DNA of 64,000 nucleotides from Macrostomum lignano (Eukaryota). Every line of letters begins with the position of its first letter. Within the stretch, counting starts at the first letter, position 1. Location: contig NIVC01000874.1 of the NCBI GenBank assembly GCA_002269645.1, forward strand, positions 357,667 through 421,666. The letters run 5' to 3'. The notes under the pieces are model-generated. The model was not told where the DNA came from, ran no database searches, and was given only the letters and a program-made list of their open reading frames with translations. A program made the position numbers and the translations under genes. This document shows, in pieces, positions 6,301 to 12,300 of this stretch.

Positions 6301-9300
6301 TCGGCCAGTCAGCCAAGCTGAACCTCGGCCAGGACGTCAAGAGCTTCAAGTACTTCACCTGCTGCGGCCTGCAGGAGGGGTTCGAGCCGTTCTGCGTGTG
6401 AGTGAAAGGGGCTGGGATATTGCTCTGGGACTTTCTGGCTTAGGAATGATAATGGGTCAAATAAATTATGAGTTACAGATGAGAATCATGATGAGTCATA
6501 AGCATCATCATTAGTCAAGCCATAGCAACCAACATGAGTCATGAGCTATCAGAAACGACGTTAGTCATGAGAACAGACATGAGTCATAGGAACAGACGTG
6601 AATCATGAAAACAGACGTGAGTCATGAAAACAGACGTGAGTCATGAGAACAGACGTGAGTCATGAGAACAGACGTGAGTCATGAGAACCGACATGAGTCA
6701 TAAGAACCAACGTGAGTCATAAGAACCGACTGAAATCCCTCTTCCCCAGCAACATGCACTCGGCGCTGCCGATGTGGTACGACCGCCTGGAGACGAGCTT
6801 CGAGACCATCTCGGAGGAGAGCTCGCACTCGCACATCCTTGCCCAGCGCTCGGCCGGCGGCACCCCGCTGATCAGCATCAGCACCAAGTACGTGCCCAGC
6901 GCTCAGGAGGACCACCTGGAGGTGGTCCGGCTCAGCCTGCCGGTCCGCTGCCACCAGCAGTTCACCAGCCGCAGCCTCGCCCAGCGCCGCGCCGAGGTTG
7001 ACAACTTCCGCAAGAAGCTGGACCCGCGCCTCCAGCAGCGCGGCGGCGGCGAGGGTGGCGGCCCGACCTCCCTGATGGTGCCGAAGGGCGCCGCCGACGG
7101 CCAGCACCTGCCATCGACCACCGCGGCCGCCGCCGCGGCCACCGGCGGAGCAAAGAAAAAGACGAAGATCGCCAACTTCTTCAAGAAGCAGAAAAGCCAC
7201 GGCGGCGCCGACGACGTGTCGCAGAGCGCCGTGACGGCCATCCTGACGCCCGACGCCAGCGCCGACGCCGGCCTGTTCGGCAAATTCGGCGGCGAAGACA
7301 CCGACCACCTGCAGTACGAGATGCAGGTGAGAGGCTGGGCGGCGCATTCCCAAACTGTCACATTCCCAAACTGTCGCATTCCCAAGCTGTCACATTCCCA
7401 AACTGTCACATTCCCAAACTGTCGCATTCCCAAACTGTCGCATTCGCAAACTGTCACATTCCAAAGCTGTCACAATCCCTAACTGTCACATTCCCAAACT
7501 GTCACATTCCCTAACTGTCACATTCCAAACTATCACATTCCCAAACTGTCACATTCCCAAACTGTCACACTTCCAAACTGTCACATTCCCAAGCTGTCAC
7601 ACTCCTAAACTGTCACATTCCCAAACTGTCACATTCCCAAACTGTCACATTCCCAAACTGTCACATTCCCTAACTGTCACATTCCCAAACTGTCACATTC
7701 CCTAACTGTCACATTCCCAAACTGTCACATTCCCTAACTGTCACATTCCCAAACTGTCACATTCCCTAACTGTCACATTCCCAAACTGTCACATTCCCAA
7801 ACTGTCACATTCACAATTTGTCACATTTTGAATCGTCACATTAGTCAACAAAAGAAATAAAGTCTCAATAAAGTTCACGAACTATTTTAAAGCTGAAAAA
7901 AAGTTTTGAGAAGAATTTTATTTATTTTTAAAATGTCAGAATTTCACGTCTAATCAGTCTTATGTTTTCTCACTGCGTAACTGGCAACTGTTCGTTGGTA
8001 TTAATAATTATTTAATAAATATATGGGTTAGATATAGATAATTACTTGACTTAAAATTGAAAAGGAGTTCCTAAAAGATATTATAGTCTAACTAGTGCGG
8101 TATGGACAGAGATATGGGCAAGTTGAATATGGGTCATTCAGTATTTCAAACATCACGGCAGCCTGTCACAGTCCCGCTACTTCATGTAGGCCAGGAACTC
8201 TGAAAGCAAAAAACTGAAGCGTTAGTTGGAGTGTCAGCTGGGAGCCCCCGATCCTTCAGCTGGGAGCCTCCGATCCTTCAGCTGGGTGCCCCCGATCCTT
8301 CAGCTGGGAGCCCCCGATCCTTCAGCTGGGAGCCCCCGATCCTTCAGCTGGGAGCCCCCGATCCTTCAGCTGGGAGCCTCCGATCCTTCAGCTGGGTGCC
8401 CCCGATCCTTCAGCTGGGAGCCCCCGATCCTTCAGCTGGGAGCCCCCGATCCTTCAGCTGGGAGCCCCCGATCCTTCAGCTGGGAGCCTCCGATCCTTCA
8501 GCTGGGTGCCCCCGATCCTTCAGCTGGGTGCCCCGATCCTTCAGCTGGGAGCCCCCGATCCTTCAGCTGGGTGCCCCCGATCCTTCAGCTGGGAGCCCCC
8601 GATCCTTCAGCTGGGAGCCCCCGATCCTTCAGCTGGGTGCCCCCGATCCTTCAGCTGGGAGCCCCCGATCCTTCAGCTGGGAGCCCCCCCCCCGATCCTT
8701 CAGCTGGGTGCCCCCGATCCTTCAGCTGGGTGCCCCCGATCCTTCAGCTGGGAGCCCCCCCCCCGATCCTTCAGCTGGGAGCCCCCGATCCTTCAGCTGG
8801 GAGCCCCCGATCCTTCAGCTGGGAGCCCCCGATCCTTCAGCTGGGTGCCCCCGATCCTTCAGCTGGGAGCCCCCGATCCTTCAGCTGGGTGCCCCCGATC
8901 CTTCAGCTGGGAGCCCCCGATCCTTCAGCTGGGAGCCCCCGATCCTTCAGCTGGGTGCCCCCGATCCTTCAGCTGGGAGCCCCCGATCCTTCAGCTGGGA
9001 GCCCCCGATCCTTCAGCTGGGTGCCCCCGATCCTTCAGCTGGGAACCCCCGATCCTTCAGCTGGGTGCCCCCGATACTTCAACTGGGAGCCCCCGATCCT
9101 TCAGCTGGGAGCCCCCGATCCTTCAGCTGGGAGCCCCCGATCCTTCAGCTGGGAGCCCCCGATCCTTCAGCTGGGAGCCCCCCCCCCCCGATCCTTCAGC
9201 TGGGAGCCCCCGATCCTTCAGCTGGGAGCCCCCCCCCGATCCTTCAGCTGGGAGCCCCCGATCCTTCAGCTGGGTGCCCCCGATCCTTCAGCTGGGAGCC

Positions 9301-12300
9301 CCCGATCCTTCAGCTGGGAGCCCCCGATCCTTCAGCTGGGAGCCCCCGATCCTTCAGCTGGGAGCCCCCGATCCTTCAGCTGGGAGCCCCCGATCCTTCA
9401 GCTGGGAGCCTCCGATCCTTCAGCTGGGAGCCCCCGATCCTTCAGCTGGGAGCCCCCGATCCTTCAGCTGGGAGCCCCCGATCCTTCAGCTGGGAGCCCC
9501 CTCCCGATCCTTCAGCTGGGAGCCCCCGATCCTTCAGCTGGGAGCCCCCGATCCTTCAGCTGGGAGCCCCCGATCCTTCAGCTGGGAGCCCCCGATCCTT
9601 CAGCTGGGAGCCCCCGATCCTTCAGCTGGGAGCGCCCGATCCTTCAGCTGGGAGCGCCCGATCCTTCAGCTGGGAGCCCCCGATCCTTCAGCTGGGAGCC
9701 CCCTCCCGATCCTTCAGCTGGGAGCCCCCGATCCTTCAGCTGGGAGCGCCCGATCCTTCAGCTGGGAGCGCCCGATCTTTCAGCTGGGTGCCCCTCCCGA
9801 TCCTTCAGCTGGGTGCCCCTCCCGATCCTTCAGCTGGGTGCCCCTCCCGATCCTTCAGCTGGGTGTCCCCCCCCCCGATCCTTCAGCTGGGAGCCCCCGA
9901 TCCTTCAGCTGGGTGCCACCGATCCTTCAGCTGGGTGCCTCCCGATCCTTCAGCTGGGTGCCCCCGATCCTTCAGCTGGGAGCCCCCGATCCTTCAGCTG
10001 AGGTCCACCGTACCCGAGACGCTGACGTTGCCATCCTGATTGACGTCCATCTTGCTGAGAACAGCCTGGGCTTCGCTCTCGGTGATGCCGATCTTAGCGC
10101 AGCCCTCCTTCAGCTCGCTCTGCAGGGAATTGAGTGAGTCAGGTATTGCAGAGTAGGCAGGTATTCAGCCTAGCAACTAATAAAGACACTTACCAGCGAC
10201 AGATACCCGCTCTTGTCCTTGTCAATCTGCTCAAACAGCTTGGTGAGCTGCTGCTTGCGGTCCTGGCTCATGGCTAGCTGCGGAGTTGCTTTGCGGAAAC
10301 TTTGAGAGAATTTGGAGGGCTTGCTGACCTGCGGGCGGGCTGGGCCGGTTCAGCCTCCCGCTTCGCCTCATCTTATAGAGCAGGCCAAGGGAGCGGGGAG
10401 GGGGTGGGTCGGGGTGGGGCTGCTCAGCGCTCGCTCCCGGGCGCTCCCACGGCCTGTTAGCAAATCCCTGGACTGGAGACCTGGACTGGGAAACTGGCCC
10501 AGCAAAGTTCCCACACAATGGCTTCACAAGAGAAAGGTTAGCTCTGGAAATTTTCTCTTGGCGATCTGGGCCAGCAGTGAGTGCAGTTTGCGGAGTCACC
10601 GACTCTCTCAGCTGAAGCCTCCAGACTCTCGAATGAAAATAGCTGTTTGGCTTTCTAATCCAGGTAAATGCTGTTCAAATAGTCCCTGTTTAGAACCGGT
10701 GTCACCCGGGCCAGTTCGGATAGGACGGGCCAGCCCGCGAGCCCCAGGCACTGCTGGCCGGCCTCGCCCATTGTTGCCAACCCCCTCCCGCCATGTCAGC
10801 TGCTCAAACTGGATTCCCCACAACCCCCCTGTCAGAACCGGTCCGAAGTGGTTCCCCCATCGCTCATCCCCAACTTCTGGCTGATTAATTATTGATGAGA
10901 AGCCGGGCCCGCAGCAGTTGCTACTATGAAAAACAATATTGCATTAAATAATATTTATTGCTTCCAAGTTTCTGCAATTTCTGCTTTTTATTGTCAGCGG
11001 AATCCAATTAATGCAATGCGTGGCCACGCATGCAAGGCATCCATCTGGGGGGGGGGGGGCGGTGAGTGGCCCTTAATTGAGGTACCCGCATGACGCATCC
11101 TGTCTCTGCCTGCCTGCCTGCCTGCCTGCCTGCCTGCCTGCCTGCCTGCCTGCCTGCCTGCCTGCCTGCCTGCCTGCCTGCCTGCCTGCCTGCCTGCCTG
11201 CCTGCCTGCCTGCCTGTCTGTCTGTCTGTCTGTCTGTCTGTCTGTCTGTCTGTCTGCCTGTCTGTCTGTCTGCCTGCCTGTCTGTCTGTCTGTCTGTCTG
11301 TCTGTCTGTCTGTCTGTCTGTCTGTCTGCCTGTCTGCCTGCCTGCCTGCCTGCCTTCCTGCCTGCCTGTCTGTCTGTCTGTCTGTCTGTCTGTCTGTCTG
11401 TCTGTCTGTCTGTCTGTCTGTCTGTCTGTCTGTCTGTCTGTCTGTCTGTCTGTCTGTCTGTCTGTCTGTCTGTCTGTCTGTCTGTCTGTCTTAGTGTCTG
11501 TCGGTCTGTCTGTCTTAGTGTCTGTCTGTCTGTCTGTCTGTCTGTCTGTCTGTCTGTCTGTCTGTCTGTCTGTCTGTCTGTCTGTCTGTCTGTCTGTCTG
11601 TCTGTCTGTCTGTCGGTCTGTCTGTCTGTCGTGAATTTTTGTTGAAACAAAAAATTCAGAAATGTTTTCTTTTTACAAATCATTTTTCAAATTTTCTTCA
11701 GCAACTGCATTTCAGCTACTAAGAGTAGTGCGTTAAAATTCTACTAATAAACTATTCTATAACTTATTTATCCATTTTAATGCTAAATAAACGAACCCCG
11801 GCAGGTGCGCGAGAACGCGGTGGCGGAGTACATCGACGAATACCACTACTCGGTGCGCCTGCTGCCCGGCCAGGACCCCGCCTGCTCGTGGGTCGGCTGG
11901 CTCACCCCGTACTTCAAGCTGCCAACGCACGACGTCGAGTCTGTCTTTGCCAGCTGGGTGGACGTCTGCCTGCTTGACGACGACTACCAGCCGAGGTCGG
12001 TGGACCAGCAACGCACGGTGTACATGGTCAACGCTGGCGACCTGCTGGCGAAGTTCGGCTCCCAGGAGGACGTGTCCAAGCGGCTGTCGCAGGGCCTCAC
12101 CATCGGCTGCTTTTTGGACGCAGCCGGCGGCTCGCTGTCGTTCGAGATGAACGGCAAACCGATTGCGGCTCGGGTGCAGGTGAGGGATCCCAGATCCTAG
12201 ATCCCAGATCCCAGATCCTAGATCCCAGATCCTAGATCCCAGATCCTAGATCCCAGATCCTAGATCCCAGATCCTAGATCCCAGATCCCAGATCCTAGAT

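Follow-up and report, generated by a model that had tools for sequence, protein, structure and literature searches.

A two-EF-hand gene lying antisense in a ryanodine receptor intron of Macrostomum lignano

Does a small EF-hand gene that lies inside a Ca2+-release channel gene have anything to do with that channel? The question is raised by a 64,000-nt stretch of the Macrostomum lignano genome (assembly GCA_002269645.1, contig NIVC01000874.1, positions 357,667 to 421,666 of the forward strand; hereafter the window), in which a gene for a 68-residue protein with two EF hands sits, on the opposite strand, in an intron of a ryanodine receptor (RyR) gene. An earlier account made from the letters of the window (the sequence-only reading) had described a hidden gene and proposed a co-regulated module of Ca2+-release channel and Ca2+ sensor, with the small protein as a dedicated RyR modulator. 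We consider it probable that the gene is an independent, transcript-supported one, that it encodes a single calmodulin-like lobe and that its nesting in the RyR intron is incidental.

Gene structure and public annotation

The gene has three coding exons on the minus strand (Table 1). Exons, GT-AG introns and product had all been predicted by the sequence-only reading, and the model is exact to the base. The spliced product, 68 residues with two 12-residue EF loops, is identical over its full length (100%) to GenBank entry PAA75584.1 (BOX15_Mlig023125g3, 'hypothetical protein'), whose annotated coding sequence spans exactly 10271..8177; window and NIVC01000874.1 agree with 0 mismatches over the 20,271 nt compared. 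In UniProt/UniRef the same product is A0A267FQS7, named 'EF-hand domain-containing protein'. The gene is already catalogued in GenBank and UniProt and so is not, as had been claimed, hidden.

The GenBank annotation of Mlig_3_7 (GCA_002269645.1) is the Mlig_RNA_3_7_DV1.v1.coregenes set, for which RNA-seq transcripts were assembled with StringTie/TACO, open reading frames were taken from TransDecoder, and transcript boundaries were placed from trans-splicing and poly(A) reads by TBONE (PMC5730564). Since this annotation was built on RNA-seq transcripts, the spliced model has transcript support by construction, if of an indirect kind.

Table 1. Window coordinates of the nested gene, its signals and the surrounding RyR features.
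Feature	Position	Strand	Description
TATA-like element TATAAG	10372..10377	-	∼ 100 nt 5' of the start codon; candidate core promoter, read from sequence
Coding exon 1	10194..10271	-	78 nt, 26 codons: GCCATG start, entering helix, EF loop 1 positions 1-10
Intron 1	10120..10193	-	74 nt, phase 0, gtaagt...ccctgcag; unchanged across the three M. lignano copies
Coding exon 2	10014..10119	-	106 nt; end of EF loop 1, helices 2 and 3, EF loop 2
Intron 2	8200..10013	-	1814 nt, phase 1, gtacgg...ttttttgctttcag
Minisatellite	8234..10000	.	22-bp unit CAGCTGAAGGATCGGGGGCTCC (minus strand), ∼ 78 copies, fills nearly all of intron 2 (TRF)
Coding exon 3	8177..8199	-	23 nt; last 7 codons and TAG stop (8179-8177); annotated end of the coding sequence
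Two overlapping AATAAA	7917..7926 (7926-7921, 7922-7917)	-	∼ 250 nt past the stop; candidate poly(A) signals
Host RyR exon 5' of host intron	6712..7326	+	ends ...LQYEMQ/gt; RLSLPV motif and low-complexity divergent region; 6712 is the open-frame start
Host RyR intron	7327..11804	+	4478 nt, CAG/gtgaga (7326/7327) to ccggcag/GTG (11804/11805); contains the whole nested gene
Host RyR exon 3' of host intron	11805..12190 (3' boundary approximate)	+	start of SPRY3
RyR calmodulin-binding helix	26982..27038	+	belongs to the host gene; RyR2 3575 onwards; RyR1 peptide 2bcx_B, E = 8.8e-6

Exon 1 is identical to the start of the PAA75584.1 coding sequence and is followed by the donor gtaagt. Exon 2 (100% identity in tblastn; donor gtacgg) encodes 35 residues plus one base, the first of the Glu-12 codon of EF loop 2. 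Splicing out intron 2 rebuilds this codon (G/AG) together with the exiting helix EFLAYMK, and the end of exon 3 reads ...S-E-F-L-A-Y-M-K-stop. All four splice sites fit the GT-AG consensus, and the long intron 2 has a polypyrimidine tract. That intron also holds the 1.8-kb minisatellite which had been said to split the gene; TRF places the array as listed in Table 1.

The flanking signals named by the sequence-only reading (the GCCATG start, TATAAG at 10377-10372 and AATAAA at 7926-7921) were all located. No ATG precedes GCCATG in the open frame, because the in-frame sequence upstream contains stop codons. TATAAG is the same in all three M. lignano copies of the gene (see below) and is a candidate for its core promoter. 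The AATAAA pair at 7926-7917 is the first minus-strand AATAAA 3' of the stop codon and a candidate for the polyadenylation signal.

A minus-strand AG six bases 5' of the ATG (ccgcag/CTAGCC, window 10272-10283) could be a spliced-leader trans-splice acceptor; trans-splicing has been reported for 38.8% of M. lignano genes (PMC5730564). If this acceptor is used, TATAAG would indicate where a discarded outron begins, and not where the mature 5' untranslated region does.

Fold and family of the 68-residue protein

The EF-hand_7 profile of Pfam (PF13499), which the sequence-only reading had proposed as a check, matches residues 7-68 with 54.1 bits (cut-off 30) and E = 2e-14, far more than chance would give, and EF-hand_1, EF-hand_5 and EF-hand_6 each match the protein twice. 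Both loops are canonical: acidic or polar ligands occupy positions 1, 3, 5 and 9, position 6 is Gly, position 8 is hydrophobic and position 12 is Glu; a loop-pattern scan of the M. lignano host intron returns exactly these two EF loops. A single-sequence AlphaFold model (pLDDT 85) places helices at residues 3-16, 26-35, 40-47 and 60-66 and strands at 23-25 and 57-59, as in the four-helix EF-hand fold with its short antiparallel pair of strands between the loops. Foldseek matches this model best to lobes of CDPK, centrin and calmodulin (TM 0.7-0.8). In the PDB the leading sequence matches are the C-lobes of plant CDPK (E = 9e-18, 2e-17), followed by radial-spoke, centrin and calmodulin entries, and the identity to an individual lobe of calmodulin, centrin or CDPK is about 30%.

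Both loops have 12 residues, there is no 14-residue pseudo-EF hand, and S_100 is not among the 18 Pfam matches (E up to 1), which separates the protein from the S100 family. Sorcin and the other penta-EF-hand proteins require five EF hands and the 68 residues hold two. With its length, its two EF hands and a sequence 30% identical to the C-lobe of human calmodulin, the protein is not a calmodulin proper. It is a free-standing calmodulin-like lobe and an ordinary member of the EF-hand superfamily. A word-indexed homolog search with the 68-residue protein returned only the protein itself.

The canonical ligand pattern points to Ca2+ binding, and we suggest, by analogy with better-known lobes, that the protein behaves as a sensor. 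The lobe would bind two Ca2+ ions cooperatively through both EF loops. As in the lobes of calmodulin, centrin and CDPK, binding would most likely open the four-helix bundle and uncover a hydrophobic cleft, which could then clamp the amphipathic helix of a partner; alternatively, two chains could dimerize. The protein would then serve as a small Ca2+ sensor of the cytosol; a role in simple Ca2+ buffering is less likely.

One conceivable source of such a lobe is the channel itself, by inverted partial duplication of the RyR EF-hand domain. In the nested protein, loop 2 (DVNQDGN/KVSVSEF) is superficially like the RyR EF-hand loop (30919-30975, plus strand). The likeness is confined to generic consensus positions of EF loops, however, and a window-wide tblastn search (E up to 10) matched only the gene's own three exons, so the origin from an RyR EF-hand exon was rejected; we regard it as extremely improbable.

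Nesting and the question of coupling to the channel

The sequence-only reading had put the gene in the RyR intron between 7326 and 11805, and the splice boundaries are found there. The exon on the 5' side (6712..7326) is homologous to RyR3 residues 1289-1303, and that on the 3' side (11805..12190) aligns to RyR1 ∼ 1432-1535 and RyR3 1317-1432. The host intron thus separates the divergent region, which comes after the RLSLPV motif, from the beginning of SPRY3, at RyR1 residue ∼ 1430.

M. lignano has two more copies of the gene (PAA53041.1 and PAA86180.1, on NIVC01003146.1 and NIVC01000292.1), whose product is the same but for N57K. Both are antisense within annotated RyR genes (products of 2874 and 4427 residues), between the same two RyR exons, and the open reading frame is intact in all three genomic copies. 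Identity among the three loci is about 97-99%, introns and flanks included; the M. lignano assembly is known to contain large, near-identical duplicated blocks (PMC5730564). Because the non-coding DNA is also about 97-99% identical, the shared nesting reflects recent duplication and is not evidence of constraint or selection. The sole coding difference, N57K (codon 57, window 10029-10031; position 10245 in the loci of the two other copies, L002 and L003), falls at position 7 of EF loop 2. It should be neutral for binding because that position ligates Ca2+ through its backbone carbonyl and not through the side-chain.

RyR loci of other animals were fetched through RyR homologs, and the flanking RyR exons were mapped to delimit the homologous interval. 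The comparison comprised Cichlidogyrus, Echinococcus and Patella and not the close relatives M. cliftonense, M. hystrix and M. janickei; for Schistocephalus (L005) and Rodentolepis (L008) the RyR locus stops short of the interval and is uninformative. The flanking exons lie 1.3 kb apart in the monogenean Cichlidogyrus casuarinus (L004 17551-18895), 1.5 kb apart in the cestode Echinococcus granulosus (L006 27907-29441) and 8.7 kb apart in the limpet Patella vulgata (L007 74819-83534). In these three intervals tblastn with the 68-residue protein found no match, and a six-frame EF-loop scan, which recovered both loops in the M. lignano controls, found no antisense loop. Since no EF-hand gene occupies the RyR interval of the three other animals, the nesting is not an ancient property of RyR genes. 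The idea that it is conserved in relatives does not hold for these species, and the three M. lignano copies are too alike to inform on it.

These results bear directly on the proposal that a dedicated half-calmodulin modulates its host RyR through the calmodulin-binding helix, with nesting as the means by which sensor and channel are kept co-regulated. The gene is indeed present in the same intron of all three RyR copies, and the protein is nearest to C-lobes of the calmodulin and CDPK type and keeps the hydrophobic cleft positions. The channel retains the calmodulin-binding helix which the sequence-only reading had placed at ∼ 26975-27050: the open reading frame 26847-27455 aligns to RyR1/RyR2 ∼ 3575-3733 and to the RyR1 peptide that was crystallised with calmodulin (PDB 2bcx). 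In RyR1, residues 3614-3643 are a binding site for S100A1 as well as for the C-lobe of calmodulin, which counts for the proposal. Against it, the copies are about 97-99% identical throughout, so that the arrangement was inherited from a recent duplication; neither strand of the RyR interval carries an EF-hand gene in Cichlidogyrus, Echinococcus or Patella; and most of the cleft methionines of calmodulin are replaced. The EF hand is also among the largest domain families, and its coincidence with a Ca2+-channel gene somewhere in a genome is unsurprising. The antisense orientation and the gene's own TATA-like and poly(A) signals favour independent transcription or interference over a shared transcript, in line with a study of nested units (PMC3192792). 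We judge a dedicated RyR modulator very unlikely, position being the one argument that the co-regulated module had in its favour. A related version, in which a single-lobe calmodulin mimic of the Macrostomum lineage is coupled to RyR in its transcription (positively by shared chromatin or negatively by antisense collision) and binds the RyR helix in a Ca2+-dependent manner, so that the channel would have a private regulator hard-wired in the genome, is in our view highly improbable as well.

We therefore prefer incidental nesting, and the gene probably has no functional coupling to RyR. A small gene that brings a promoter-like element and poly(A) signals of its own would have come to sit by chance in one 4.5-kb intron of a host that is very large and rich in repeats. 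Animals commonly have genes within introns, and one report puts them at about 6% of D. melanogaster genes (PMC3786989); nested transcription units are described more for transcriptional interference than for co-regulation (PMC3192792). As the nested gene overlaps no RyR exon, the mature mRNAs would not be complementary.

Several points weigh against an independent gene that is nested by chance. Its transcript support follows from the method of annotation and not from reads. The locus tag Mlig023125 is absent from the searchable full texts and supplements of M. lignano papers. An exhaustive search of representatives gave no ortholog beyond M. lignano, a result to be read with the fact that the summed scores of giant multi-EF-hand proteins outrank those of small orthologs; with no ortholog identified outside M. 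lignano, there is no proof of purifying selection. Divergence among the copies amounts to 1 of 207 nt in the coding sequence, about 1% upstream and 2-3% in the 3' flank, and with so few differences a selection test is without statistical power. Finally, incidental nesting is the default assumption rather than a demonstrated negative.

Some of these observations would also suit a locus with no function at all, be it a chance open reading frame, a decaying duplicate or an annotation artefact of noise antisense to RyR: no ortholog was found beyond M. lignano, the gene goes unmentioned in searchable publications, and the sole substitution among the copies is non-synonymous. We nevertheless think this very unlikely, because both EF loops are fully canonical (Pfam E = 2e-14), all four splice sites follow the GT-AG consensus and the long intron has a polypyrimidine tract, the reading frame is intact in three copies, the model folds confidently and the annotation pipeline demanded RNA-seq-derived transcripts with a coding open reading frame.

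As it stands, the finding of an incidentally nested gene matters little, since the gene is already public as an uncharacterised EF-hand protein and antisense intronic genes are common. If the coupling were true, an ion channel would here carry in an intron the gene for its own Ca2+-sensing subunit, which would be rare, and M. lignano, with transgenesis, RNA interference and in situ hybridisation, is a good system in which to test it. The sequence-only reading recovered the correct three-exon model across a 1.8-kb minisatellite; its functional story was drawn from position.

The minisatellite itself includes 65 near-exact units at 8234-10000, with none elsewhere in the window. In the other two gene copies the array has a 26-bp consensus and ∼ 65 copies (L002 10272-11897; L003 10272-11878). 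The intron 2 array evolves much faster than its flanks, as both unit and length differ between copies that are ∼ 98-99% identical. Two further arrays of the host intron are one with a 16-bp unit (7345-7827) and one of (TCTG)n (11105-11630), and the window holds > 20 tandem arrays with a TRF score > 400, mostly within RyR introns. Most RyR introns sampled (window 3858-42503) carry a long array with an intron-specific unit (periods of 4-243 bp, up to 180 copies); examples lie at 12186-14702, 28168-29382 and 34744-36465. Long, intron-specific arrays are thus the rule in the window, and the intron 2 minisatellite is a genomic habit of M. lignano and not a feature of the nested gene.

For the host, the gene listing of NIVC01000874.1 over the same 22 kb gives the 68-residue gene only and no RyR gene. 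RyR on this contig appears to be unannotated or fragmentary, and none of the RyR models is full length; a literature search found no paper usefully linking Macrostomum with RyR. The pore region lies at ∼ 33.4-34.0 kb, and the open reading frame with the apparent C-terminal coding segment ends at ∼ 36.6 kb. Further 3', on the minus strand, are a tubulin gene of at least two exons (39044-40762; Tubulin, Tubulin_C), a nucleoside diphosphate kinase gene (42995-43567; NDK E = 8e-55) and a gene whose large, low-complexity product has a Jiv90 domain at its C terminus (47903-50560).

Comparison with known systems

As an arrangement, the locus recalls the cholinergic locus, where VAChT lies within the first ChAT intron, in that a small gene is wholly contained in an intron of a gene of a related pathway, in this instance Ca2+ signalling. 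VAChT and ChAT are co-oriented, have common promoter elements and are conserved across phyla. The M. lignano pair, in contrast, is antisense, its nested gene has a promoter-like element of its own, and the arrangement is absent at the three other RyR loci examined.

As a protein, the product had been likened to the 8-kDa Ca2+-binding proteins of flatworms. Like Fh8 of Fasciola, Sm8 and Sj8 of Schistosoma and Ch8 of Clonorchis it is free-standing, of about 8 kDa, has two EF hands and comes from the Platyhelminthes (68 residues against 69 in Fh8). Fh8 is an 8-kDa, two-EF-hand Ca2+ sensor which opens on Ca2+ binding, has high homology with Sm8, Sj8 and Ch8, and is an excreted/secreted surface antigen of the parasite Fasciola (PMC3928792). 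The likeness stands for size and layout and fails for kinship. BLASTP against Fh8 (AAF31420.1 / Q9NIG5, sequence confirmed by exact look-up) gave 18.5 bits over 23 residues, out of register, with EF1 of the Macrostomum protein paired with EF2 of Fh8 and no collinear homology; calmodulin scores far higher (42.7 bits over the full length), and the Fh8 family did not turn up in the word-based homolog search. That the nested gene is the Macrostomum ortholog of this family, as length, EF-hand number and flatworm origin might suggest, consequently has very little probability.

The calmodulin C-lobe (EF3-EF4) shares with the nested product the paired canonical 12-residue loops and the four-helix bundle (TM about 0.7). 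Identity to the human C-lobe is 30% over 66 columns (42.7 bits), and the core and cleft positions stay hydrophobic. Compared with calmodulin, the Macrostomum protein is a single lobe (68 versus 149 residues), its inter-EF linker is two residues shorter, and of the four methionines in the C-lobe cleft three have given way to other residues (M109 to C, M124 to V, M144 to Y). Its sequence is far from the near-invariance of true calmodulins.

The C-lobes of the calmodulin-like activation domain of CDPK (soybean SK5, 1s6i; Arabidopsis AK1, 2aao; apicomplexan CDPK1/4) are the best sequence matches in the PDB, with a structural TM of about 0.8. The alignment to CDPK lobes is free of gaps, and the short inter-EF linker is therefore common to both. 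CDPK lobes belong to kinases of plants and alveolates, whereas the Macrostomum protein is free-standing, comes from an animal and has neither a kinase domain nor a junction region. The similarity of about 30-35% is one of the superfamily and not of orthology.

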